From positions 1 to 17,747 of the forward strand of contig CAXIUT010000115.1 in NCBI GenBank assembly GCA_964035545.1: 17,747 nt of DNA, read 5' to 3'. Under the pieces are notes generated by a model. It did no database searches. It was not told where the DNA came from and was given only the letters and a program-made list of their open reading frames with translations. Position 1 is the stretch's first letter. Every line of letters begins with the position of its first letter. The translations under genes were made by a program, and so were the position numbers. Shown one piece after another: positions 101 to 17,747 of the stretch. The DNA is from Bugula neritina. Its lineage: Eukaryota > Animalia > Bryozoa.

Positions 101-585
101 TTTAAATAATTTCTAAGAAACTTTGTTTATTTCAGTATATTCAATAACAGTTGATTCGATTTATTTTCCTTAGTAATCCGTTCTTTAACCTTTCCCCAAC
201 ATCTTACTCAATTATTAAATCCTCCGGTGCTTCATATCAATCTATTTTTTCATAAGTTTCAACCTCTCCTTAAGTTCTCCTGCCACGTATTTTTAATGTT
301 CGTTAGATGCAGATACAATCTGGTCACTTATCAAAATCTACATCAACCATACAATACCTGGCAAGTTTTCTTTTAAAGCTATTCCTGTAGTTGTTTTCCT
401 CGAGCTAATAATCTCGAATTCTACTAAAATAAAAGTCCAACCAATGCTGGCAGTTCAATATCTTTTGGATTCAAAGCTATCTGCAAAGCCTTTCTATTGA
501 GAGTCATGAGTTCTTTGAATTAGTTGTTTTCTTCTCTGAGAGTTTTGTTCTCTGTTTGCAGGAAAACAATCAAATCAGTATGTTC
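101..585 (-). CDS. Internal fragment of a coiled-coil protein gene (no start, no stop); 20-nt intron at 338-357
   Basis: With UAR=Glu it reads EHTDLIVFLQTENKTLREENNEFKELMTLNRKALQIAL...KKTCQ|ILISDQIVSASNEHEK...EINKVSEKLFK. The intron gtattgtatggttgatgtag joins the two frames. The ORF is bounded by telomeric repeats on both sides. Confidence 0.7.
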
Positions 586-587
586 GC

Positions 588-605
588 AACCCCAACCCCA
601 ACCCC
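588..605 (+). repeat. Short internal telomeric tract (AACCCC)3; probable left telomere of the 11-kb mini-chromosome
   Basis: aaccccaaccccaacccc interrupts an ORF on its left and is followed by ~107 nt of AT-rich leader and then the RRP12 ATG. Confidence 0.85.
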
Positions 606-712
606 GATAATAAATAAATGAAACAAATCACCTTTAAATAAAATACCTTATGAATGATTTTTAATATAAATCAAGATAAAGAAATTATTATTATTGATCT
701 TACATTGTTGAA

Positions 713-3700
713 ATGGAAGTCGAACATCTAGCATAAACCCTTGCCTTAAAATTACAATAAAAATCATAAGAAAGTCCCATCTTCAGAAAAGCACAAGCTG
801 TACTACAATCACTCATGCAAGCCTCACTAACAATTCAAAACTTTAATACTACAGTCGCCAACAACTCCAAAACACTTGCCTTCTACCTAGTTGCAGGTAC
901 ATACAAACTACTCAAAAATATAATCGATGGAGACCTAAAACACGAACATCAACTTGATGCCTATCTCTTGCTTCTCAATATGACCCTACCTGAAGCCTCG
1001 ATTGATGCACTAGTCAAAGGAGGATTACTGCAATAGCTTAGAAAGTTCATGCTTATCATTTTGAAAAAGAAAGATAATACTGCCCTTATGACCAGAATAG
1101 CTACTTCTATTTTATCGTATTCGTTTACTCCAGGAATGGCATCAACCAACTTCAATAAAGGGTAAGATAAAGTTGTTTTAATCGATTTATTCAATCGTTC
1201 TGTGGCATCTCCGAGAAGCAATACTCTCAGTCGTTAGTGTTCTAAACTAATCACCAATTTGTTGAAAAATAATTCCACAGTTAGTCCAACAATCGCATAA
1301 TAAGCAAAATCACATCTACTAACAGACTTATAATAAAGAAAATAACTCTATCTTTCGAACATCAAAGAAGTCATTTTCTAGCTACCAGTTAGACTAATCA
1401 ATGATATCTGTTATAAAGTCGCAACTAATCTCACAGATATCGACCCAACTGACACTAACCAATAACAATATCTTTCGCAGACATACTTCTTCCTCGAAGC
1501 AATGACAAAAAAAATGTTATCATCTACCATCGAAAGCGTCATTCTCATCTTAGTCAACTCGATACCTGCAGGAACTATGCCAGAAAAAGTACAACTCAGC
1601 TTCCTACAACTTCTATATGAACTTACTATTTCATTAGTTCATATTCAATAATAAGCCTGTAATCGTGTCCTTTCACCAGTCATCTCAGTCCTTATGGAAA
1701 TGTTACTTATCAATAGAAAAATTGCTAAATTCGCTAGTAACCAACTCCTCTTCATAGTGAATAACTGTATCAGACCTTCTTTATGGAAAAGAAAGACTGA
1801 TTAACTCTCACTTGAAGGAATGGAACTCTAATAAAACAGTCAATAATTCACAAAAATAATATGTCTATTTCAAGGTTTACTTTCTTCAAGATTTGGAGAT
1901 CATAAACTTACTGCTTCTCTGATTTCCACTTTTTTTAATCAACTATAAGAAGAAACCATTAATGAATGCCTAAGTTTAATTCACAAAATAGTTTAATCTC
2001 GAAATTAATTGGATGATAAAAGCTTCAAAAAAATCATGGAATCTGTTCTTATTGCATTCGGAATTGATAATATGATACGGCTTTATCCTTTAAGTCTCAA
2101 TGGAGATATAGGAAATGAATCTTTTGAAGACTAAAATAATCTTTGGCTTTTATCTTGCATTTAAAAAACAGATAGAGAATAACAAATGACAATCTTCAAT
2201 CTTTACTTATTGCCTTTATTACAAAAAGCAAGAGTAGTCAGTCAAAGTGCAGGCCTCCCAAAACAAAGAAAATAAGCTTACACTTTAGTCTAAGAACTAC
2301 TATGGCGTTGCCTAAAACCATTTACTAAAATAATTGATAATAATGTTAATTATGAGCAAGTCTTCAATCTCATCGAAGGATAAATCAATAAAGTATCATA
2401 AAATACTTTACAACAACTAGCTTCAGCTTTATAACATCTTTCCAACACTCTTGTTCCAACTAAATATAAGAGCAAAGGAGCATAAAATCTTATCAAAACA
2501 CTAGCTAACATCTTAAATATCAATAGTGGAACATCAAAAAATATTCTTCAAGCTTTACAAGGACTAGCAAAAATAGCTCCAGTTTAATATGTAAAAAGAG
2601 TATTTGATAAAAATATTTAAAAGTTGATTTCTCAAGGAGAAGAGAAAGTTTTAATAAAAGAATAAGATAAAAATTCTAAAAATTTATAAATTCTTATGGC
2701 TATTAACTCAGCAATCGATTTAAGAGATCCTTCAGTAACTACTAAATATAGAATATCTAGAGAATAGTTGATACTAAAATTGATAACAGTACTTATCAGT
2801 TCAAATGGAATCTTCCAAAAAAAAGGATATAAATATCTCGGATAGATTCTTTGTTCAGCGCCAAAAAGTTTATATCTCTAAATTTTGGAGTTATTCTAAG
2901 ATAATTTTAAAGTTTAGAACGGATCAAGGCATCATCGACTCGCTGTATTAGGAAAACTATGGAATTGGCTCAAAAATGACGGTATTGAATAAAATCTATA
3001 AAATCTGATCAACTTCATTAAGAATTTTCTACCTTAACTTCTTCTTTCTCTTCGTGAACAAAATAAAGGAGCCAGACAATAAGCTTAAAGATTGATTGTT
3101 TCTTTTGCAGATTCAATGAATTAAATGTAAATCCTAAGCAACTTTATCTAAACTGTTTGTGCAGGTTTTGTTGGATAAAGAAGTTAAATGAAACTAGCCA
3201 CTCTCAATGGCATTGGTCTCATAGTCTCAAGAGGATATTGTTCTTAAACTATTTTTCAAGATGTACTTGAACTAGTATTATTACTGCTTAACGATAAAAA
3301 ACAAGAAATTTACAAAGGAGTAGTAGAGTATTGCAGAAAAGCTATTCTAGGATTATCAGTTAACGACCAAAAGAAATATTTACCTGTTATTTTGAAGGTT
3401 CTTTTCGAATAAGATGAAGATAGTAAGTTATAAAATCGACATACTTTGAGATATTTTTTGATTAGATTAGCTAAAAAGCATGGAAAAGATTCTATCGAAG
3501 AAATGATACCTCAGCTACATAGAAAAATGTTATCACATACCTTAAAAATGGAAAATAGATAAAAGAAAAAGAAAAAAGAACTTAGAAAAGCTAAAATGCT
3601 ACAAATTCAAGAATAAAAATAAAAACTTAGAAAAGAAGAAAGTTCAGATTAAGAATAATAATAAGCTCAAAATTAAAACAATCAAATGGATATCGAATAA

Positions 3701-4215
3701 CCTCTTTAATAACTTTAGAATAATAATAACTTATTGCTAAAATATGATCTAGAAAAAGAACAGTTTCATTTTCAAGATTAACAAAGAGGAAAACCTCTTA
3801 TGGAAAAGAAAAATAAGAAATCTAGCTAAAATATTTCCTTTGATAACGAAGGAATGATGATTATTGAATAAAGAAAAAGACCTAGAAACTTTTAATAGAA
3901 CTAACAAGCAGAATAAAATGTTAAAAAAACAATGGAACAACCTCTTAACTTCAAAAAGAAATCCAAAGGTATTTTTTTGTTTATTTAGTCTAAATACATC
4001 AAATTAAATAATCAGGTGAGACCTATCGTACTAATAGAGCAGGAGGAGATCTCAAATTAAAAGACAAGCCTGAGCCTTATGCTTTTATTCAATTCAACTC
4101 GAAAGCTCTCAATAAAAGATTCAAAAAAAGAGCTGAGAAAGTGTTTGATAATCTGTTTGAAAAGAAAGAAGGAGGACTAAGAGGGTTAAAATCAAGAATG
4201 GTAGGAAAACATTGA
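713..4215 (+). CDS. RRP12: RRP12-like ribosome biogenesis protein (~1160 aa); 20-nt intron at 3969-3988
   Basis: ATG at 713, open with TAA/TAG as sense, ends TGA at 4213-4215. NUC173-like segment FGIDNMIRLYPLSL...NLWLLSCI; KKHGKDSIEEMIPQLHRKML; characteristic C-terminus GETYRTNRAGGDLKLKDKPEPYAFIQFNSKALNKR, reached only after removing gtatttttttgtttatttag. Confidence 0.9.
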
Positions 4216-4249
4216 TACTAAATAGATTTATTTATCTGTGCTATTCAAA

Positions 4250-4748
4250 TCATTAAATCTTCCCAGAAATAATAGTGTTAACAAAGTCCTTATAGTAAAT
4301 CCTTGAATTAGTTACCTTGGCATACTTCAATATCTCCTTAGATTCTTCCTCGTTCAAAGGCTATCCAAAAGCATTCATTATCTTCTTGAGATCTGCCTCA
4401 GTAATATATCCATTTTCCTCTTTCTATTAATATTGTTACATTCATCGAAAAAGGAAAAAGCTCTTAAAAGCTCATCATTATGATTGATACTAGACTGTTT
4501 GGCTGCAAATTAAAGTCCAACCTAGATAAACTTTAGCATGCTAAAATGACCTTGTTTCATAGGATCAACCTTTTTTTCAAGTTATACAATTTACTATTCA
4601 GTTGGAAACAATCGAGCAGATCGAATAAGTTTTGCTTAATAGATAAATAAATACCTATTTATGATGTTTTTATGGTATTTGGGTTATGATTCTTTTTATC
4701 TTAGTAGACCTTGAATATTTATTAGAGTTTCTCTTTAGTGACGTTCAT
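4250..4748 (-). CDS. Calmodulin-like EF-hand protein (~152 aa); 20-nt introns at 4635-4654 and 4420-4439
   Basis: MNVTKEKLEEIFKVYEDKK...SEIAKLIRSARLFPTEEEIVELEKKVDP...ELLRAFSFFDEEENGYITEADLKKIMNAFGEPLNEEES...IYYKDFV aligns to the calmodulin/myosin-light-chain pattern (PTEAEL, AF.VFD.DGNGYI, GEKLTDEE). Ends in TGA. Confidence 0.88.
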
Positions 4749-4850
4749 TGTACTTATTTACAATAATTTCAAATTATTATTATTTATATTAAAAAAAACT
4801 ATGATTTCAAAGGTCCAAAAAGCAAATCAATAAATCAATTGACCAATAAA

Positions 4851-6103
4851 TCACTTCATAATCTAGGACTCATCTTACTCGTAGATTTCAACTTTCTCAG
4901 ATTCGTCTTTCATTTGATTCTATAGGGGTTAATCCTTTGTCACATTTCTCGTCTTATTATTTCTCATTTCATATTTTTTATTTGAGGATCTTTTCCTTGA
5001 ATTTTCTGATATCAATCTTGAAATTTATGGATGCCTTCTGAAAAATTTTTAAAGCCAACCTTTACTAGCTTTAAACTATGTTTATTTATCAAGTTAACTG
5101 CTTCTTCCAAAAATATCCAAAGCTTTCAATCGAATTTCTTTATTAGTTATTTGCAAACCAAATTTGATCATCATCCTGATCCATTTTATCAAATCTTTCT
5201 CCAAAAATGGAAATAAAGGCATTCTTCCATAATTTCGATGATTCTGAAGCTCTTTTTGATAAGTATATTTTGTCTGTTGAAGTTTAGAAAAGCTAATTTA
5301 ATTATGTCTTATAATTTTCTTCTTTATTTTTTTTCCTTTCGAAGATTTTTTATTCCATGATTATTTTGATCTTTTTCTGAGATTTTTTTGACTTTTTTAT
5401 GATTTAACATTATTCATCCCTTTTTCTTCCTTTATTGGACATTTTATTGAGGATTCTTCATTTTTCATATCAAAACTTTCCTCATCAGAATACTCTTTGT
5501 AGTATACTAAGGAATTTCTTTTTCTCATTTGTCTTGAATTAGGTGTGTTAACTGATAAAGAGAACTACCCTAAGGAATGATTTACAATTTCCTCTTGAAC
5601 ATCTTTGAAATACGCTTATAATTATGCTTCTTAGACTTTTAGATTGTCTTCTTTAATTTCGTCATTTTCTCTCTCTTCTTTAGACGATGATTTTTCACAT
5701 GATTTCTTTTCCAATTCTTCAGAACTAGGAGTCACTATCATTTCTCTTTTTACAACTTGAGAAAACATTATTTTTTCAATTTCTTCTTGCTCCTCGATTC
5801 CAATAGGGTTCAATATTTTGGTATTTCCTCTCTTTTTGATTTCGTTCCCAGATTGATGTCCAAACCACTTAGCTTCAATCTTGGTTTCATTCTCTTCTTC
5901 ACCTTGATAATTTTTGTCGTTTTGAAGCAAAACCTGAAAAATTCGAGTTATCTTCCTGAATACTATATCCTGAATCAAGTACACATTGGTTCTTCAAGCA
6001 AAGGCTATCCCCTTAGAGCTTGGTAGGCTACTATCGCTTCATAGATTTTGGTGTATAGGTTGTTTATTTCCATAGTTATCGGAGACTAGTGCTCTTCGTC
6101 CAT
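4851..6103 (-). CDS. HTH CENP-B/Tc5 (pogo-like) DNA-binding domain protein (~410 aa); 20-nt intron at 5963-5982
   Basis: Domain at about 5025-5225: GRMPLFPFLEKDLIKWIRMMIKFGLQITNKEIRLKALDIF...FKASKGWLEKFFRRHP matches the HTH_Tnp_Tc5 consensus (P.LE..L..W...I...A...F.AS.GWL..F..RH). The intron removes an in-frame TGA. No DDE domain follows. Confidence 0.82.
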
Positions 6104-6292
6104 TATAACTAAAAAATAGAGTCTTTTGAATGATTAAATTGTTAAATAGCAAGATTCATTTCTTTATTCGCTAGCAATTAAACTTATGATAAAAATATTA
6201 AATTGATACTACAAGCAAAAAAATACTCAGAATATAATTTTGTATTATCTTTTAAGTCATAAAATAAGACTATGTAAATCAAATTTTTACTA

Positions 6293-6688
6293 TCATTATT
6301 CGTGAAGTGCTTTCTGAATAAGTGAATATTTTTGAATTGATCCGACATGACCCTCATACTTTTGCCAAGGAATATCTTTTCTCCAATCAACTGCTTTTCC
6401 AACTCTTTAGCTAATCACCATATCTATGTCATTTCCATTCTCTTAAGACTTATAGCAAAATACTTTATAAAGATTATTTTATTCTACTTTAACTCCACCT
6501 AAAAGATGGCCATGTAAAGTAGCAGTCAAAGATGGTTCCTCTTTGATAGTTGATTTAAAGTAATTTCTAATTTTCGCATCAAGAATTGGCTCTTAAGGAG
6601 TTAATTTAGCAGGAATAAAGTGCCATTCACCGTTCTATGTGAGATTGTTGTTGATTGCTATGTTGAGCATGGCGCTTTTTTATATCAT
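6293..6688 (-). CDS. RNASEH2C: Ribonuclease H2 subunit C-like protein (~131 aa)
   Basis: WHFIPAKL...DAKIRNYFKSTI...LTATLHGHLLGG...VDWRKDIP...IQKALHEE* follows the RNase H2C layout (H.lP, A.V..YF, FRGR.L.G, W..d.P, a.aiH). Intronless, ends in TGA. Confidence 0.72.
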
Positions 6689-6813
6689 TTAATACAATAA
6701 GAATAAACAATATCCATAATATTAAAATAGATGAGTAAAAATAGTCATGATTGTTTACTATGGATAAAAAATTATATTCTCTATCCTTTCAGTTATAATT
6801 TGATTATATCTAT

Positions 6814-9800
6814 ATGAACCGTCGAGGAAACAACCACTCAACATAACGAGTAATCGAAAGCAGACAGACTAACCCTCGCATCAGCTATTAAAGAAAATGT
6901 CATACTCCATCAAGTCAATATCAAACACAAAAAAAAAGCAGTACTTCTATCAATACCCAGAATCAAAACACAAATAAACATAAAAAAAATCAAAACATCC
7001 ATCAAAACACAATAAATATCTAGATATACAACTCCCACAACCACATATCAACCCGAAAAAGTAATCACCTTTCAGACATAAACGTACTAAAATATATATC
7101 CAGCAAGACCTATCACCAACCTTAACAACATCAGACACGCCCGCAATCTAGAACATCAACTATCCAATCTTCATGAATCAGCAGCTTATGATTCCATACT
7201 CGAATAAAGTGGAAAGAAAGGAAGATCTTAAACTATTACTAATAAAGCCATTGTCTAAGGAAAAAAACTTATGAAAAATAACCAGTTCTAGAAAGGTCTT
7301 ATGGTCTTTTCAGAATGTACACAAAGAGATCCAAATAGTCTAGAAGCTCAATATCTACTAGGAGTTTGCGCTTTTCATCTAGAACACTACGATTAAGCTA
7401 TTAATTACTTTAGTCCTCTACTCAGACAAGAACCTTAGTATCGTAAAAATGCCTATCTATTTCAAGCTATTTCTTTCAAAAAGAAACAACTAAATGATGA
7501 AGCCCTTCTTACAGTATTTTAAAACTAATATAGCTCACAGATGCTTTACACTACTATCCTAAATACTTCGATGCAATGATTTTAAGGGCAAAAATTTTAT
7601 CTAAATTACATCGATACTATGATGCATTGTAAGACCTTAATAGAAGTCTCAAAATATAACCTGGAAATCCTCAATCTTTAATAGCCAAAGCCGACTGTCT
7701 CAGATGTCTCAGCCAATATTCATAGGCAATTAAAATATATAATGAACTTCTCTAATCAGGATGGGATTCTGAAGTTGTGCTAAAGAGAGCTATTGGTCAT
7801 ATCGAAAATAATTGTCCAAATTAAGCTCTTCTAGACCTTAATCGTCTAATTCAGCGCTCTCCTAACAACTCTTAAGCATATCTCTTCAAAGGCCTTGCTT
7901 TTTCTAAAATGAAAAACTATAATTAAGCCATTCTAGCATATTAGCAAGCAATGAAATTTAACAGTTCAAGAAAGGCTACAACCAAAGCTCTTTATGAAGT
8001 CAGCAAACTAAAAATATAACTTGGAGATTACTATGGAGCAAGTTATACTTTAGAAAGAGCTGGAACTCTAGACGTTGATCAAAAAGTTATTTAAAAGTTG
8101 AGAATATTTACTGAGGGAGCAACTGCGATAATGAAAAAAAAGTTTAAAAGAGGAATCTAAAATCTTAATTATCTAGCAAAAAAAGAACATCTCAGTGAAC
8201 AAATTAGACCATTGTTATACTCTTTTAGAGCCTATGCTCATTTTTGTCAATGTAAATTTATTAATGCTCTAAACGATCTAAATTCTCTTCAAAAATTAGG
8301 TTTTTCATGTGATCCAGCAAGTGAATATAACTTCCGCCTTTTGACAGGAATATTCCATGCTCAAAATAACAACTTTGCACTTGCTTTAACATCTTTTGAA
8401 TAAAGTTAATAATTCCGCAGGGAATTAAGTGATCCAATAATATACAAATCTCTTACAAAAATATCTTAATACAACCGCAATCCAAAAACAAAAGATCGTG
8501 GCCTTCTCGAATAAGCCATGAAATTAATGAATTTAGCACTTAACAAATAATAAAACTATAATTCACATTATCTAAGCTCAGCAATATAATATGGACTTGG
8601 AAACTTTAAAATAGCACATTAACATGTTTAAAAAGCTATTTAACTCTCAGATGATCATGTGCTGAAGCATTTCTATCTCAGAGGATTGATTCATGGTATT
8701 GTGGGAAAAACAAGATAAGCTTTTATTGATTTTAGTAATGTTCTCAGTTTGGGAAAATAACTTAAAGAAAAATCTGAATCTGAAGATGGATAAAAATAAA
8801 AATAAATACTTTAGTCATATCTCAATAGAGCTAAATGTCATCTTCTATTTGGATAAAAAAAGAAAGCATTTCAAGATTTACAAACTTATATTAGTTTTAA
8901 ACCTCTAGATAGTTAAATCCATACTGTTGCTGGGAAGTTGCTCTTTTCAATTGGTGCATGTGAAGATGCTATAAAAGCATATAATTATAGTCCAAATATC
9001 GATAAAAAACGTATTTCTGATCTAATTTAGGTGATTAATTAATAGAAAGAGCAAAATGCTACTTAGTGTTAAAGTAGCTTAACTTATGTCTCAAAGATCT
9101 CTAAAAAGCTGTAGAGTTAGGAGATTCTCTCTCAAGATTTGATTATTGTTGTTTGGCAGCTTTAAAATAAGCCAGTAAAGGATCTGCTTAACATTATCGA
9201 TAAGCGATGCGCAAATTAACTCCTGCTTAAGGTTTTACTCTTCAAAAAGGAAATATTTTCACTCAAGCAGATTATTATTTTTACAAAGGTTTACTTAGTT
9301 TCTTCTTAGGACAATATCCCTAAGCTCATAAATTATTAATAAAGTCTAAAAATCTAAAAGGTCTAAACAATGAACTTGAATTCCTTTAATAGTCCGATCC
9401 TTAAAAGTTCATTCCTTAACTATTCTAAAATAAGATATATACCGATGCTTAAATTGACTACAATATTGCCTTGTGCGATCTTCTTCTTGGAAATTAACAA
9501 CAAGCGAAAAAAATACTTTCACAATACTAAAGTTTTAACCTTCTTTTCGGTAAATAATAAACTGAAGAGCCTCTAGATTTAACTCCTTTTCCTGTTACTA
9601 ATCGACTCTGCTCGATTTTCCCATAATTTCAATATCCTTAAAACAAATCAATCCGATTTCGTTTATCTTTTTGCCTTCCAACAGTAAGTCCACCATAAAT
9701 AAAATTTTAAATTTAGCCTAAAATAATCTAGTAACTAGGTATGAGTTCAACAGAACCCAGACCTGATGCCCCATGGATAAAAAGAAATACCTTTGGAGTA

Positions 9801-9995
9801 ATATTTACAGACGAAATGGTGGGAGTTGACATTGATATCAAGACTTAGAAAAGTGTAAAGAAGCTGTAATAGATAAAGATTTAGATGGAATAAGATAGTC
9901 CAGTTGTAGAGAAGAAAGATTTAAAAAATATGTTTGCTCTCGACTCAGATACCTAGAATAAACTGGCTAAATTAATGAACAAAAATAAAAAATGA
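6814..9995 (+). CDS. Large tetratricopeptide-repeat (TPR) protein (~1040 aa); 20-nt introns at 7514-7533 and 9011-9030; start uncertain, with one apparent frameshift in the A-rich 5' region (~6930-6990)
   Basis: Many TPR helices, e.g. EAQYLLGVCAFHLEHYDEAINYF, SEAYLFKGLAFSKMKNYNEAILAYEQAMKFN, KADCLRCLSQYSEAIKIY. C-terminus contains EPRPDAPWIKRNTFGVIFTDE. TGA at 9993-9995. Confidence 0.88.
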
Positions 9996-10032
9996 ATGTT
10001 TATTTGAATTTTGCATTTTTAAGTAATAAAAA

Positions 10033-11346
10033 TCATATATTTACTATCTAATTACCCTCAGGAAGCTCAGTCTAGTTCTTTGATGGACCTTCCTTAAAAC
10101 CTTCTTTTTCATATTATTGCTTTTCCTCTTCCTTTATCTATTTTTCGCTTTATCTGCCTTAATTTTCTTTTTATTTGATTTATGTCACCTCTTTCTGATT
10201 TAATAATAAACTTCGACTAGACTTTTCCTCATTATTTTCTTTGTTTTTCAATTCTTCAGACTATAAGGGTAATTCACCTATCATTCTCGATTCATCTAAC
10301 TTCAATTTCTTCTAACTAGCAAGATAATCCAAAGCTATTCTACTTTTCTCCATTTTCCTCTTCTTGATCTCTTTTAGCTAGATTTATAATAGTCCCATCA
10401 GCTACTTAGCATTATCAGATTTAATCTAGATCTAGCTAGTTTTATTATCAATCATGACGCAATTAGCAGCTTCAGTATCTAACTCCTTCAACAATTTATA
10501 ATATTTGACTTGGCTAAAATTTTTATGAGATTCCATCTTCTTCCGAATCACCTCCATCTGATGTTTCCGCTCATATTGCTGTAACTATCTACTTCTAGCC
10601 ATTGCCTACTCACTTTTTATAGATTTTATCTTCTGATATTCAACTTATAACTGATTTATGAATGGATCTAGTTAGGTTATCTTTGCTTCAAGTTTAGCAT
10701 TTTCTTATACTACTCTATCACTATCAGCTTTTAACTTATCCAGACGGACATTAATAAGCATTTAATCAGTTTAAAGTAATCCCAATTTGGGATCTTGACT
10801 TTATACTTCTCTAACAAGATCTTTTCCCTCACGATTGACGCTAACTCTTTGCTCTATATTGGCATGTCTTAACTAATTAATATCATTTTTTATACTTTTT
10901 ATCTTTTTTGTAACTTATATTTCTTCCTGATGCTAAATTACTCTACTGAGCTTTTCTTTTAAACTTTAAATCTAATGCACCAATATATTAATATGTTTTT
11001 TACTATTTTCCACTTATTTTTAAGCCATTTGATTCTGCTGTTCAATACTGATCATTCTAGCATTCTTTTTAGGTTTCATACTATTAATCAAAGACAAAGT
11101 ATCTGTATTCATTTTTTTTAATATTCCTTTTAATGTAGTTTGTTCTTTATTAACATATTTAATATCTTTTTGATCGTATTAGATATTAGAAGAAAGATGT
11201 GCGACTGTATCAAGATAATTTGATTTATTTTTCTTATTATCACTTTAAGAATAAGTAATCGTCTTATGGATTCCAGGAAGAGCAACAGATGTGTTAGATT
11301 TACTAACTGAATTGTAATTTCGAGGCTTATGCCTCAAATCAGGCAT
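10033..11346 (-). CDS. Hypothetical coiled-coil protein (~437 aa; alternative in-frame ATG at 11367)
   Basis: Continuous TGA-free frame from MPDLRHKPRNYN to an E/K-rich C-terminus with heptad-like composition. No recognised domain. Confidence 0.75.
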
Positions 11347-11510
11347 TATAATAAAATTATCCATCATTATTCATTTTTAATTGATTCAGAATATCATTAA
11401 TTAGTATGAAATATCTATACAATCTAAAATATAAATAATAGAATTGAGCTTTAATGAATTTATTTTATGAATGATTCTTATTTACACCAAATTTATTAAT
11501 TAATATTTAA

Positions 11511-11568
11511 GGGGTTGGGGTTGGGGTTGGGGTTGGGGTTGGGGTTGGGGTTGGGGTTGGGTTGGGTT
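11511..11568 (+). repeat. Telomeric (GGGGTT)n tract; right telomere of the mini-chromosome, internal in this window
   Basis: G4T2 repeats ending in two G3T2 variants, preceded by an AT-rich subtelomere. Confidence 0.95.
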
Positions 11569-11582
11569 AGAATGATCTAGAA

Positions 11583-13795
11583 ATGCAATTCGATCATAAT
11601 GAAGCGCAATAAGAAAAAGAACTTAAAAATAAAGTCATTTTCAGTATTCAAGGATTAGGAGGAGTACGCACCATCCAAAGATCAGAAAAAGTTTTTCAAG
11701 CATACATCAAAGGAACTCACTGTGAATAATCAGTATAAGATCTTGTCAAATTCATCAAAAGATAGCCTCACGCAAATCCTAAAACAAGACTTCTTCTTTG
11801 TGACTACAACATATTTTAAAGCGATCTTTTAAAACTCTTACCTTCACAAGTCGATGATAAAAAGCTATCATTCTGGATCATTGCCCTTATGACTCTCCTC
11901 ACCAACAAACCTATTGATGATTTAAACCCTCCATAAACAGCAAAACTCTATGAAAGTCTCAGAGCCTACAAGCAAAGCTGTATCGATAGAGATTGCTTTG
12001 AAGTTTTAACAGTTCATATCGCAGAATACTACAGAATACCTGAATAATCAAGAACAAAAGCACATATTCAGATGCAATAGCTCATAATCTTGTTAATAAG
12101 AAATCTTTTGCAAATACCGAACTAATAAAAGAAACCAAATCTACACAACCACTTCCTAGCAACCATGCTCAAAGGATAAATCATGAATCCTATCCTCTAC
12201 ATACTCCAAAAAGATTTTACACCCTTTAGATATAAAATCGATATTCCTCTACTATAAATCCTCTACTACACCTTCACCTGCTTCGATCCAGAAATTATCT
12301 ATCAGATCAAAAGCAAATCTCTGATTGATATGAACAATATGTGCAAATCGAACAGAGGAACAGTGCCTACTAGACATTCAAGATTCCAACCTTTGTTTTA
12401 GATACCTAATTCAGCTGGGCGTTCAACTCTTTCCTTTAAAATAAAAGGAAACAAAGAAGAAAAACCTTTTTAAGGACAAAGAAAACAACCTCAAAGAATG
12501 GTTTAATACAAAAAAGTTATCAGTCTCTAATCATAAAAATTTACAGCAGATGTAAGAAATATAATATTTAGTTCATGTCCCTGCAAGTTGAAAACGATGG
12601 AATAACTAAAACTCTCAAATAGTATGTCACCACTCTAACAGAATAGTTTTTATAGTTATAATTCTAACTAATAGTTCAACTAACTTTCAACTAAATTTTT
12701 AGATAAACTGGTAAAGTTAGTGACCAAAACATCATGCAATATCTGTTGCTTTGTAGTTGGGCACTACAAATGGTTAGAGCTAAATATCATTATTAAAAAA
12801 GCCAAGTAATTTATAAAATAATTCAGACAAATAATAACTAACTAGATAGAAATGTGAAGTTCTAATTAAGTTGGGTAGTATAAGTCATGCAAAGTACCCA
12901 TTTTGAACTAATCTACAAAATACTCTATAGATAAGCTACCCACTAAAAGAAAAAACACTTCAAAATTAATCTATTCAATGCAGCTATCAAACTCTTCAAC
13001 TCCTACCTTGATGTAGTCGATGATATTTCCAACTCAATGGTGATGGCAGACAGAAAAAATGCCAATATCCTGATGGCTAACATGTTCCGTCATGACATTG
13101 CTAAAATAATTCGATAAGGATTTGGACGAGTCAATCATGAAGGCATCATCATGAGTCTTATCAAAATCACACATAAGTTTTTCAAATTATTGTCGTATTA
13201 TTCAAATGGAAAGGTTTTGATTATCCAAACTAATAAACTTTTGAAAAGAAAAAAGAAACAATATAATTAAGAAGGATAGTAACTCTAGATGTTCAAAGAA
13301 GGATAATAAAACTATTAAGTATAATAAGGCAAAAATAAATAAGAATAAGGTAAATTCCAATAAAGAAAATATAATTAGAAATCATAATTTGCATTCCTAG
13401 CATAATACGATATCATCTCGAAATACATATCTTTCCTTAAACACTAAAAGTTTGTAACAAACTCAAATTAACTCAATTAAGCCATTTTCTTCTTCCTCAT
13501 GCAACTCAAAAAGCTACTAGGAGGATAATGGCTTTTCAATCAGGCATAAACCCTTTGTGTTTTTCAATAAATTTTAGTGAACCATGATTGGTGTCGTAAA
13601 AACAAATAAAAAGCAAAATTTATCCAATCAGTTTGTCTTTCTTTTATCCAACTTTTAAGAAAAAATCCATTAGCTTTAGTTTAAAGTCTATTTAGATATA
13701 GCAACCTTTCAATGAAATAAAATATATTCAAAAATTATTCATAATAATATGAATAAGTATTAGAACCAGAACAAAACATGTTTACAGATGAATGA
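11583..13795 (+). CDS. TIMELESS: Timeless/Tof1/Swi1 family replication-fork protection protein (~730 aa); 20-nt intron at 12552-12571, possible 21-nt intron at 12806-12826; true start may lie beyond the junction
   Basis: YIKGTHCEESVEDLVKFIKRE, FESDLLKLL, MQELIILLIRNLLQIP, LLEILYYTF..FDPE, PTRHSRF and KNPLALVESLF parallel Timeless motifs (CLESVKDL, QSDLLPIL, IERILLLVRNILHVP, LEIVSL, RHSRF, AFVELLF). Confidence 0.9.
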
Positions 13796-13854
13796 TTAAC
13801 AGTCCAATATTTTATAATTTAGTAGTTTTGATAAAATAATTAAATATTGATTTA

Positions 13855-13930
13855 GGGGTTGGGGTTGGGGGTTGGGGTTGGGGTTGGGGTTGGGGTTGGG
13901 GTTGGGGTTGGGGTTGGGGTTGGGGTTGGG
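13855..13930 (+). repeat. Telomeric (GGGGTT)n tract closing the Timeless fragment, internal in this window
   Basis: G4T2 repeats 59 nt after the Timeless TGA. Confidence 0.95.
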
Positions 13931-15056
13931 ACTTTCCACATCTTCAAAAGACATAGAATTTCTCTACACTATCCTCTGCATCATCTCCTTTATATCCCAA
14001 GATCGAATTGAATGATCATAGCTTCCAGAATACAACATATTATCCGCAAAAGATAAAGATATTATACCGTCATCATGACCAGCCAACTCCTCCACCTACT
14101 CCATCTAAGGCCAATGATACACTCTGATCTTTCGATCATCACATCCCACATACAAATGATCAATCAAATACTCCATAGTCAACACCCAACCACCCAAACC
14201 CTCAATCATCTTCTTATGCACAAATTTCTATCTAAATAAATCAATACGTCTGGCTACTCAGGATCAAAAGCATTCAAATCATAGACCAATATCTTGTTTT
14301 CAGTATTTCCAAAGACCACTGTTCCTCGAAACAGAAAAGGCAGTAATAGAATGTTTCTTGAATTTAATACAACGAGTTATCTTATTAGTGCCTCGATCAA
14401 TTTGGTAAAAATGTATTTCGACAACTATCGCATTTATTATTTTATCTTCTCCCGCTCTCAATGCATTCACAGGTCCGTTCGTCTTGTAAACTGTCTAAGC
14501 ATCTCCATTCTATCTAGATATATAGATACAGATATGTTCCAAGTTCGAATTGTTCCATCATAAGAACCACTAATAAGAGTGTTTCCATCCACGTAGAGAT
14601 TGCAGACTCGCTTTGTATGACCGATAAATTGATTCAATATTTCTCCCTGGTTAGTAAAACTCCATTAGACTATTGTTCCGTCTTCAAAACTACCAAATAG
14701 TGTTTTTTAGGTAAAACAAGCCGATACTATCTCTTCTCGGATATCAGGTTTCTGCTATTCTTCCTAAATTATCTAGAGTTGTACTTTTTTTTCTTACTTT
14801 CCCTCGACTTCAAAAATAGCTTCTTCTTCCTTTTACTCTTTACCTTTTAATTTCTTATCAAGCAAAGCTTTGATAGTGATTTATCTTTTAGCCAAATCCC
14901 AACCTGCATATTATGAATAAAACCTCTGACAGATCCATCTTTAGAGATAGAATAAAGCATGTGTCCAGCTTAAGCATAAGGCGAGAAAAGAGTGATGACT
15001 GACTATTTATGTCCTTTGAGTCTATCTTTAAAAGCTCTTGACTTGACAACCTTCAT
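13931..15056 (-). CDS. WD40-repeat protein, 3'-truncated at the telomere junction; 20-nt introns at 14904-14923, 14510-14529 and 14228-14247; one apparent +1 indel near 14335
   Basis: WD repeats LKGHKESVITL..SISKDGSVRGWD, FIGHTKRVCNL..LISGSYDGTIRTWN and LAGHDDGIISL..LYSGSYDHSIRSWD. The frame is still open when it reaches the telomeric tract at 13930. Confidence 0.88.
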
Positions 15057-15143
15057 AATATAAAACTGATAATAAAAACAATAAAACTTGATTTAAATCA
15101 TTAATTATCAATATCTTAATCCTAAATAATTACTTAAACATTT

Positions 15144-16248
15144 ATGATCTCAGAAGAATAAGTTTACTATTTTTATAATAATAAAAAGTCGTTTATCGAT
15201 GAGAGACTATTTCAAATACTTAACAGTAAATGAAATAAACAAGTAGATCAAAGATACTTTCTTTTCAGCTAAACAAAAATAACATAAATGTCATAAAGTC
15301 AAAAAAGAACTCATCCTTCACAAATCAACCAAAAATTTCATCATTATGTTAACTAAATCAAATGCAAACAAATATAATATCAAAACATCATTAATCCCAA
15401 CAATGATCTTTAAATACTATTGAATAGAAGAAAAAAAAAATTAGGATAGTCACTAGAAAAATATTAAAATAAAATCAGATCTAAAACTTTAAATCACTCA
15501 CTTAGATAACCTTATGATCTAGCCAATTAAAGAATCAGTCTAACTATGAATAAAAATAGAAACTATAGTAACCAACCATCTTTCTCTTATCATAAAAATG
15601 ATAACAAATTCGATGACTTTAGACATATATAAAAACATAGATACTAAACTCAACCTACCTAGAATTACTATCAATCAAAAGTTCAATCTAAATTAAAAAA
15701 CCTAAAAGATTATAAACAATCGTATAATTAATATAAAAAATAAGAATTTAAAGATAAAAAACGTTTAAAATCAATACCAAACGTAATAAACATAAGAGTA
15801 GACACGAAAAAACAACAAAAATAATAAATTATTTTCATTTGCAAAAGATAGCATAAAACAATAATAAAGAATAGAAAGTAATATGATATATAAAAAATGA
15901 ATCATATCCAAAAACACTTAAACTATAAACAGCACCAACCTAACCAATAGAACACCCATAAATAACAAATAAATAATATCATAGAAATGAGTTAGATAAA
16001 TAACAATATAAGAAAAGAAAGACATCGAATGTGTAACATAAAGGAATACTATTGATTAAAAATAGAATCAATCGTAATCAATAAAATAGTATCAATCAAT
16101 GGAAAACTAACAAAAAATTATAAAATATCAAAAGTCTTATCCTTAAATACAGTATTAACATTTCATTAGAAGTGATCTAAAAACTAAATTATCCTCATCC
16201 AGCCATCTCTACTATCAAATTAAAGCCATCAGAAGCAAATCTAAATGA
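15144..16248 (+). CDS. Hypothetical low-complexity (N/K/E-rich) protein; probable 21-nt intron at 15226-15246; a probable frameshift, otherwise it ends at 16055
   Basis: ATG at 15144 and long TGA-free frames filling the space between the WD40 and PDF genes. No recognisable domain. Confidence 0.5.
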
Positions 16249-16271
16249 TATTTATTATTTTATACACTAAA

Positions 16272-16826
16272 ATGACCTGTAGAAAAGTAGTCAGAATGGG
16301 TGATCCAGTCCTCAGATAAGTAGCCCAAGACATCCCAATCGAATAAATCAAATCTAAATAAATCCAATCTCTCATCCAAGATCTCACCATCACGATGAAG
16401 TAATACAAAGGACTTGGAATAGCCGCTCCACAAATAGCCGTCTCCAAACAAGTCTGTCTCATCGACATCCCAGCCTATAACGCAAGATATGGATAACTCA
16501 CTCCTGTCCCCTTCACCATCGTCATCAACCCAAAAATAACAATCCTCAATCCAGACAAACAAGGCTTCTGGTAAGGCTGTCTCTCTATTCCAGCATTCGA
16601 GGATACGTAAGAAGACCGAAAAAGATAAAAGTAGAATTTTACAACTAAAAAGCATAATAGATAACAATGGATATATAAGGTATGGGAGCAGTGGTCTTCC
16701 AACACGAAGTAGATCATCTCATGGGCGTCCTCTTCGTAGATAAAGGTCGAACCAACCAAAATAGCCTATATTGAATAATTCTAGCAATTCGCTATTTACA
16801 AAACTGAAAAAGTCCTTGATGACTGA
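16272..16826 (+). CDS. def: Peptide deformylase, bacterial-like (~184 aa); two apparent single-base indels (~16593, ~16744)
   Basis: All three PDF motifs are present: GLGIAAPQI, W[TAA=E]GCLSIP and QHEVDHLMGVLFVD. N-terminus MTCRKVVRMGDPVLR. Intronless. Confidence 0.92.
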
Positions 16827-16883
16827 ATATATTCAATAAGTAATATAATCATCGTATAACAAATTTCTTCTTTACATCCATCT

Positions 16884-17585
16884 TCATTTCCTAGTCTTAT
16901 TCGTTTGCAGCAGTTTATCTTTCTTTTTAATCGTATTGCCGATTGAATTCATGAGACGTGAACCCGTAATCAGAAAATAAGACACTTTGGTTCTTTATTC
17001 CAGATACATTTTGAACTGCAGGCGTGCATTTAGCTGTCTTAGAATTTCTATTTCTTTACAAATAGTCAACTCCCTCTTGGTTTCCTTCTGTTGCTTCATC
17101 AAATATTATATAGTGCTCTTTAAAGCCTTCTTCACTCCCACCTTGTCCTGGTTCTTCTTCAAAGTAGCTATATTCACCTCTTTGTACCCACTTCTCTGTC
17201 GATATTTAGCCTTTTCCACAGGTTTGATATCCTTGAACTCGATATATTTTTATTCATCTTGCTCATCCGATTTTATTTGTTTACTTTGTCAGATCTAAAC
17301 AAATAAAATACGACACCCCAATTGCCCTCTTTGATACTATACTTTTATTTATTTCCAAAAGAAGACCTATCAATGATCCAACTTTTAAACTAACTCTTGA
17401 GGCTAATACCTCCAAATTTAAAATTAGATTCTTTCCCCTTTCGACACATTGAATCCTACTTCCTCAACTATCTTGTCCTAACCAACTCGACTAACAAAAA
17501 TCTATTCAGATAGAAATCTAAAGTAGATATTATTATTTGTCGGGAGAGATGAAGTCAGTACAATTTTAGTAATTTAAATATTCAT
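16884..17585 (-). CDS. Hypothetical protein; 20-nt introns at 17390-17409 and 17295-17314; probable indel near 17247; 3' end uncertain
   Basis: MNIEITKIVLTSSLPTNNNIYFRF...ERIEFEIWS|LKVGSLIG...AIGV|SDKVNK. Two 20-nt GT-AG introns avoid two TGAs. Basic, coiled C-terminal part. Confidence 0.5.
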
Positions 17586-17663: not shown

Positions 17664-17747
17664 GGGGTTGGGGTTGGGGTTGGGGTTGGGGGTTGGGGTT
17701 GGGGTTGGGGTTGGGGTTGGGGTTGGGGTTGGGGTTGGGGTTGGGGG
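17664..17747 (+). repeat. Telomeric (GGGGTT)n tract, right end
   Basis: G4T2 repeats, some G5T2, to the window end. Confidence 0.98.

Follow-up and report, generated by a model that had tools for sequence, protein, structure and literature searches.

Putative 20-nucleotide introns with an adenosine six bases from their 3' end on a ciliate somatic chromosome

Background

Contig CAXIUT010000115.1 (assembly GCA_964035545.1, filed under the bryozoan Bugula neritina) is a stretch of 17,747 bases with 30% G+C, analysed here over its full length and called the window. Several of its protein-coding frames are broken by segments of exactly 20 nucleotides that start with GT and end in AG. A preliminary description, made from the letters of the window, listed 13 such segments and took them to be fixed-length spliceosomal introns. 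This raises the question whether they are introns, and if so, what it is that holds them to one length. The answer that the evidence below points to is that they are very probably ordinary GT-AG (U2-type) spliceosomal introns, pushed to a lineage-specific minimum of 20 nucleotides in a ciliate with the peritrich genetic code.

The window carries (CCCCAA)n at its left end (7-100) and (GGGGTT)n at its right end (17664-17746), and it is therefore a telomere-capped ciliate somatic chromosome. Its long frames are rich in in-frame TAA and TAG and are broken by TGA only. TGA also terminates the RRP12, EF-hand and deformylase genes. When the proteins are aligned with orthologues from related species, a TAA of the window is found opposite glutamate in 116 of 218 cases, and opposite TAA or TAG in 55. 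For TAG these numbers are 12 and 15, out of 34. Both codons thus align mostly to glutamate or to TAA and TAG, as would be expected if UAR (UAA and UAG) means glutamate, which is what the preliminary description had proposed. Judged by these alignments, the code is the peritrich nuclear code, in which UAA and UAG specify glutamate and UGA is the stop.

Very short introns are known from other ciliates. In Stentor, 93% of introns are 15 nucleotides long, with GT-AG ends, an AT-rich interior and no strong branch consensus; a putative branch adenosine is nearly invariant at position 10 of 15, or 11 of 16 (PMC9505925). Counting back from the last base, both of these are position -6. In an intron of 20 nucleotides, this corresponds to position 15. 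Paramecium introns are somewhat longer, with modal lengths of 22 nucleotides in P. caudatum, 23 in P. bursaria and 25 in P. tetraurelia (10.1101/2024.08.09.607295).

Introns in the window

All 13 segments of the preliminary description are indeed 20 nucleotides long and run from GT to AG, and 12 of them have an adenosine at position 15, the exception being 17295-17314. The further claim that all 13 are introns that restore a reading frame holds for 11 of them, which have introns at the same codon in relatives. The other two, 17295-17314 and 17390-17409, are unsupported. Conversely, two introns had been missed, at 6941-6960 and 7084-7103.

This leaves 13 supported introns in the window (11 listed and 2 added), and every one of them is 20 nucleotides long. 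Five are in phase 0, eight in phase 1 and none in phase 2. The density is around 0.7 introns per kb. The coordinates are collected in Table 1.

Table 1 Introns and intron-like segments of the window, each 20 nucleotides long. A slash marks the place where the intron is taken out of a protein sequence.
Position	Strand	Gene	Status	Phase	Details
338..357	-	A, coiled-coil-like open reading frame cut off by the left telomere	intron	0	frame restored
3969..3988	+	RRP12-like (698-4212), close to the 3' end	intron	1	joins 1090-codon open reading frame to conserved C-terminus
4420..4439	-	C, inside EF-hand loop	intron	1	spliced product FSFFDE-E-ENGYITEADL
4635..4654	-	C, EF-hand	intron	1	frame restored
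5963..5982	-	D, close to the 5' end	intron	1	joins start-codon exon to 369-codon open reading frame
6941..6960	+	F, TPR	intron, first of the gene	1	GTACTTCTATCAATACCCAG; unlisted in preliminary description
7084..7103	+	F, TPR	intron, second of the gene	1	GTACTAAAATATATATCCAG; unlisted in preliminary description
7514..7533	+	F, TPR	intron	0	splicing gives 34-residue TPR unit in register with its neighbours (by eye)
9011..9030	+	F, TPR	intron	1	frame restored
12552..12571	+	H, TIMELESS/TOF1-like	intron	0	frame restored
14228..14247	-	I, WD40	intron	0	frame restored; L011 orthologue GTAATCTAATCGTCATTTAG, 20 nucleotides
14510..14529	-	I, WD40	intron	0	junction ...DGTIRTWNIS/NGDA; L011 orthologue GTAAGTGACTGGTGATTTAG, 20 nucleotides
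14904..14923	-	I, WD40	intron, GTT start	1	junction ...DGSVR/GWDL; L011 orthologue GTAACTCTTTTGCTATGCAG, 20 nucleotides
17168..17187	-	K	candidate		GTACAAAGAGGTGAATATAG; A at -6, T at -5; takes out an in-frame TGA
17295..17314	-	K	listed, unsupported		GTC start, no A at -6
17390..17409	-	K	listed, unsupported		GTA and A at -6; sensible only combined with 17295-17314

At each of the 11 junctions of the listed introns, a frame-compatible GT..AG segment of 20 nucleotides is present. Other lengths of the form 3n+2, from 8 up to 44, fit at between one and six of these junctions. The 11 spliced frames give continuous EF-hand, WD40, TPR, RRP12 C-terminal and TIMELESS-like protein. The frame restoration is convincing, and far beyond chance.

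A GT and an AG at this spacing are in themselves not remarkable. There are 97 such pairs in the window, which is no commoner than at other spacings. This means that the signal is in the junctions and not in base composition. Adenosine makes up 26% of the bases inside introns, yet it is found at -6 in 13 out of 13 supported introns. By chance, this would have a probability of 0.26^13, or about 2.5e-8. A at -6 is thus well above the AT background.

The two added introns were exposed by aligning the 5' part of the TPR gene with its orthologues. Jointly, they connect an ATG near 6818 with the main frame of the gene. They had been overlooked because no TGA breaks the wrong frame there. The counterparts of 6941-6960 are GTATAGTTTGACTTACACAG in related contig L009 and GTAGGTCTGCTCTCACGCAG in L008, with conserved flanks on either side; those of 7084-7103 are GTAAAATTGATTTCATCAAG in L009 and GTAAGCAGCACTAGATGTAG in L008.

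Orthologous introns in relatives

The RRP12-like, WD40 and TIMELESS-like genes were used as queries, in pieces free of stops, and these found related fragments at 58-93% identity, on contigs numbered L001 to L026. The relatives comprise at least six distinct taxa, and several of the contigs are syntenic with the window. One related metagenome sample comes from a marine biofilm. Compared to the window, nucleotide identity is roughly 64-80%. At the protein level, RRP12 is 60% identical and the product of the TPR gene 78-79%.

For each of the 13 supported introns, relatives have an intron at the same codon. Among the 28 orthologous copies, 23 measure 20 nucleotides, two measure 21, two measure 22 and one measures 23. 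None is shorter. All 13 introns of the window and all 28 copies begin with GT and end in AG. The length is therefore very sharply defined, and 'fixed-length', as the preliminary description had it, is too strong a word.

The longer copies are spread over several genes. The RRP12-like intron 3969-3988 has orthologues of 20 nucleotides in L003, L008, L009/L010 and L023, one of 23 in L004 (9960-9982), and one of 22 in L017/L018/L021 (around 4560-4581 in L017). In the EF-hand gene, 4420-4439 has copies of 20 in L008 and L009 and one of 22 in L023. For 4635-4654, the copy in L008 is again 20 nucleotides, and those in L009 and L023 are 21, with the A remaining at -6.

Elsewhere the length is 20 throughout. 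The orthologues of 338-357, at the same codon, are GTAAGAATCTTTATATCAAG (L001/L002) and GTAAAATTGCCTTAATTTAG (L009), where the flanks have been kept and the interior has not. In gene D, the protein match with L008 starts immediately past the 5963-5982 junction, and GTAGGTGTGTATCTATGTAG, of 20 nucleotides, is found at the equivalent place. Both 7514-7533 and 9011-9030 have 20-nucleotide orthologues in L008 and L009. The TIMELESS-like intron 12552-12571 has them at the same protein position in two GC-richer relatives, L012 (GTAATATTTAATTGATGCAG) and L014 (GTATATAGTGTCTAAAGTAG).

The codon that is split by 4420-4439 is of use here. It reads T/AG in the window and in L008, G/AG (glutamate) in L009 and G/AA (glutamate) in L023. 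This match supports both the exact boundaries of the intron and the reading of UAG as glutamate.

Motif matches without such a counterpart did not survive this comparison. The segment 12395-12414 and other motif-only hits are ruled out as introns, as the orthologous proteins are continuous there.

Pooling the window with the relatives gives 36 introns of 20 nucleotides. In all of these, G1, T2, A15, A19 and G20 are present; A3 is found in 35 and T16 in 27. Over all 41 introns, including the longer ones, 40 have A at -6, and this includes 27 of the 28 orthologous copies. Position -5 is T in 31, C in 6, G in 3 and A in 1. The earlier statement that this position is T or G is correct for the 13 listed segments, and it fails as a general rule. 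Position -3 is T or C in 37 introns, and G in none. At the remaining intron positions, T makes up 47% of the bases and A 26%.

When orthologues are compared, the variable positions agree in 33% of cases, as this composition would give at random. GTA, A at -6 and the final AG on the other hand are retained in 22 to 23 of 23 orthologue pairs, while the flanking proteins are 60-79% identical. Orthologous introns with a randomised interior and an unchanged length show strong and long-lasting selection on length itself.

In four of the five copies of 21 to 23 nucleotides, the A is still at -6. The extra bases are between the donor and this A, which means that the A is anchored to the 3' end.

Length spectrum

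The motif learned in the window was counted in 85 kb of non-redundant related loci, for each total length from 12 to 60. For GTA..A(-6)..AG, there are 87 instances at length 20, versus 39.2 +/- 6.9 at other lengths (z = 6.9). If a T at -5 is also included, this becomes 42 versus 10.9 +/- 3.5 (z = 8.8). No other length stands out. There is a faint bump at 25, and no excess at 15 or 16. By this spectrum, the clade as a whole has a sharp mode at 20.

A scan based on open reading frames alone likewise finds an excess at 20 only. It is weaker than the motif spectrum, since TGA is rare and the background is therefore high. Frame profiling by codon usage was too noisy to place introns.

Splicing, excision or frameshifting

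Several observations weigh against reading these segments as spliced introns that branch at -6. RNA was sought in sequencing runs, and the runs that hold this sequence all behave as DNA. Among 18 database proteins that match the RRP12 C-terminus, none is spliced, and several are genomic-frame read-throughs across the intron. The sample consists of one 17.7-kb chromosome plus about 85 kb from relatives, which is short of genome-wide, and a spectrum based on a motif is compatible with a thin tail of longer or motif-free introns. The branch point is inferred entirely from conservation, and the 22-nucleotide copy in L017/L018/L021 has a T at -6 and its A at -7. In addition, two genes of the window, deformylase (near 16595) and WD40 (near 14319-14345), have frame breaks that cannot be put down to an intron. 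Given these breaks, frame logic alone is not fully specific, and the case for introns therefore rests on the orthologues.

It could be that the segments stay in the RNA. They would then be assembly or sequencing artefacts, ribosomal frameshift sites, or DNA-eliminated sequences that are seen in germline-like DNA. The DNA-only runs and the single-base frame breaks would both fit this. A 2020 paper from the reference list of PMC12411067, going by its title, reportedly describes programmed ribosomal frameshifting as more prevalent in peritrichs. Artefacts however would not take the form of 20-nucleotide GTA...A....AG blocks, at the same codons and with random interiors, in independent assemblies of several species. 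Nor is a shift of 20 nucleotides a ribosomal frameshift.

The sequences that ciliates eliminate from their DNA have TA/TA boundaries, whereas the boundaries here are GT/AG, and the segments lie between telomere tracts. Telomere-capped DNA contains them, as does each of the DNA runs covering them, from which it follows that they are not removed at the DNA level. Four runs were mapped on 3600-9500, and their contigs are continuous through the introns, with no joints. That the segments remain in the RNA is hardly credible in the light of all this. Removal from RNA by the spliceosome would account for them far more simply.

Branch site and length

If the segments are spliceosomal introns, very little of them would appear to be constrained: GTA at the 5' end, the A at -6, usually followed by T, and the terminal AG, usually with T or C in front of it. 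The other 12 to 13 positions would be freely evolving AT-rich filler.

The A at -6 is most likely the branch adenosine. It is the sole conserved base of the interior, it is anchored to the 3' end, and in 3969-3988 there is no other internal A to choose from. The putative branch adenosine of Stentor, itself nearly invariant, is likewise found at -6 (PMC9505925), so the Stentor-like position of the A noted in the preliminary description is supported. Branching at this place would produce a lariat loop of 15 nucleotides and a four-base spacer ahead of the acceptor AG. Rfam and tRNA scans of the window and the related loci gave no matches, and hence no small nuclear RNA gene.

Alternatively, A at -6 and T at -5 might together belong to a longer 3' splice-site signal that a protein or a small nuclear RNA recognises, with the branch at some other residue upstream. 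Most of the introns do have several other internal As, and one orthologue has its A at -7. But 3969-3988 lacks a second internal A, orthologues share no further conserved position in the interior, and the near-invariant putative branch A of Stentor is at -6 as well. This alternative is quite improbable.

What then sets the length of 20? The preliminary description proposed something akin to a ruler. In the strict form, the spliceosome would measure exactly 20 nucleotides from the donor, and length alone would set the 3' splice site. This agrees with the 13 out of 13 introns in the window and the 23 out of 28 orthologous copies, and with length 20 alone standing out in the spectrum. Within the window's own species, the strict form even meets no exception, as all longer copies are in relatives. 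Three supported introns (4420, 14228 and 14510) moreover have an AG at positions 15-16 that is not used, which had been offered as a sign that distance sets the splice sites. This last argument is not needed. That AG holds A15, and if A15 is the branch point, the AG could not serve as acceptor in any case, ruler or no ruler.

The copies of 21, 22 and 23 nucleotides at the same codons are harder to fit to a strict ruler. Four of these five hold their A at -6, and not at +15. A strict ruler is thus an unlikely explanation.

What fits better is that 20 nucleotides is a floor, with a fixed spacing from the A to the 3' end. The extra bases of the longer orthologues are 5' of the A, and the lengths run from 20 to 23 and never below, as befits a floor rather than an exact ruler. 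The distance from the A to the acceptor would then be the fixed quantity, and 15 nucleotides the apparent minimum from the 5' site to the branch. As for the preliminary description, its observation is largely right and is partly confirmed here. Its interpretation is partly supported: right in outline, and overstated where it speaks of 'fixed' and 'ruler'.

A more far-reaching idea, put forward tentatively, is that 20 nucleotides is a hard spliceosomal floor, made up of a minimum loop of 15 nucleotides plus the fixed -6 spacing. The lineage might have reached heterotrich-like spacing independently, and minimal intron sizes in ciliates might be 'quantised' by lineage (15, 20, 22-25), presumably through changes in U2-associated and branching factors. 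If true, this clade would offer a second natural system, independent of the first, for studying a spliceosome that works on a substrate barely exceeding its active site.

Comparison with other ciliates

The introns described here share with those of Stentor and Blepharisma a near-invariant length, GT-AG ends, an AT-rich interior and A at -6 (40 of 41 here). The parallel with Stentor extends to the introns that are one base longer, which also keep the distance from the A to the 3' end, as the 21-nucleotide copies do here.

There are differences as well. Heterotrich introns measure 15 or 16 nucleotides, and those here measure 20 or more. The presumed lariat loop would be 15 nucleotides, compared to 10. 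Most heterotrich genes are intronless, against the density reported above. Also, 20 is of the form 3n+2, whereas heterotrich introns are dominated by lengths of 3n and have a phase-0 bias (PMC13685798). The lineage itself is distant from the heterotrichs, with oligohymenophorean-type telomeres and the peritrich code. It would be a second lineage with near-invariant length and A at -6, with a loop that is five bases longer than that of Stentor. The two lineages offer a natural comparison for asking what limits how close the branch can be to the 5' site and to the acceptor.

Paramecium also has features in common with the ciliate described here: C4A2-type telomeres, GT-AG introns of about 20-30 nucleotides and a dominant length that is species-specific. 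Its introns are also depleted in lengths of 3n, so that retention breaks the frame (PMC13685798). The mode in Paramecium is 22-25 with a spread of around 20-35, while here the mode is 20, with 5 of 41 introns longer and a maximum of 23. The distribution here is apparently much sharper, given that all 13 introns in the window and 23 of the 28 in relatives share one length, and that none is shorter. The genetic code differs too: UAR is glutamine in Paramecium, and glutamate here.

As had been pointed out before, a retained intron of 20 nucleotides always shifts the frame. This fits the avoidance of 3n introns that PMC13685798, a 2026 paper, describes for non-heterotrich ciliates. The same paper reports intron length distributions as narrow as those of Paramecium for the peritrichs Campanella sinica, Epistylis hentscheli and Vorticella campanula. 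For these peritrichs, its available text mentions neither a modal length nor a -6 adenosine nor a comparison of orthologues. No explicit description of a class of 20-nucleotide introns in peritrichs was found in the literature. The length of 20 is a new and very sharp class within the known phenomenon of tiny ciliate introns.

This has a practical side. In gene models that are based on the genome only, unrecognised introns of 3n+2 bases resemble frameshifts, and this may bear on the reported frameshifting in peritrichs. Standard spliced aligners and gene finders often have a minimum intron size above 20.

Gene K and other frame breaks

Gene K holds the two listed segments that are unsupported, and one candidate that is outside the earlier list. 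If 17295-17314 is spliced out, one way of joining leads to an in-frame TGA right after the junction, and the other to two unconvincing frames. An alternative open frame, with the kinase-loop-like IKEGNWGVVF, spans both 17295-17314 and 17390-17409 unbroken. Removing the candidate at 17168-17187 joins the two longest open frames of the gene. Pfam had no match in the three pieces of gene K that were scanned, which did not include the IKEGNWGVVF frame, and no orthologue of gene K was found among the related sequences.

The peptide deformylase gene (about 16245-16773, + strand) switches frame between EGCLSIPA and IRGYVRRP, near 16595 (16590-16600). The Pfam family Pep_deformylase matches both frames, at profile positions 42-66 and 128-153, which makes this one deformylase domain. 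A GT..AG segment of 23 nucleotides at 16571-16593 was considered as an intron here and rejected: it would remove the essential EGCLS, and both frames are in one Pfam domain. The gene is apparently one base short; an error in the assembly, a lesion and a -1 frameshift site are all conceivable.

The WD40 gene, on the - strand, can be compared with L011, where the frame is continuous. Two single bases are absent from the window, at about 14345 and 14319, 26 nucleotides apart. Three frames are involved around the stretch CLFCFEEQ: its own, a different one upstream and another one downstream. Introns of 3n+1 with GT..AG ends are ruled out for the break near 14330, given that L011 is continuous and the window is two single bases short. 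Both this break and the one in the deformylase gene may be assembly errors or real lesions.

Chromosome ends and internal telomere tracts

Gene A (- strand, 100-510) runs into the left telomere with no TGA on the way. Its orthologues in L001/L002 and L009 extend much further, which means that the chromosome end has cut gene A short. A CCCCAA remnant of 16 bases is found at 590-605, between genes A and B.

Internal (GGGGTT)n tracts are found at 11511-11566 and 13855-13930, both with the same polarity as the telomere at the right end. Gene I (WD40) enters the second of these without a stop codon. Its L011 orthologue extends for some 27 further codons and ends at a TGA, which means that the tract is at a deletion or break inside gene I.

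The EF-hand gene ends (4252-4257, - strand) in ...GKI TAA TGA. This last TAA, immediately ahead of the TGA stop, could be read either as a final glutamate or as termination.

Finally, in run X4, which is from another sample and differs by 1-2% in sequence, a contig starts at 6752, where it is preceded by CCAACCCCAACCCC. This telomere addition in the X4 population means that fragmentation can alternatively take place between genes E and F.

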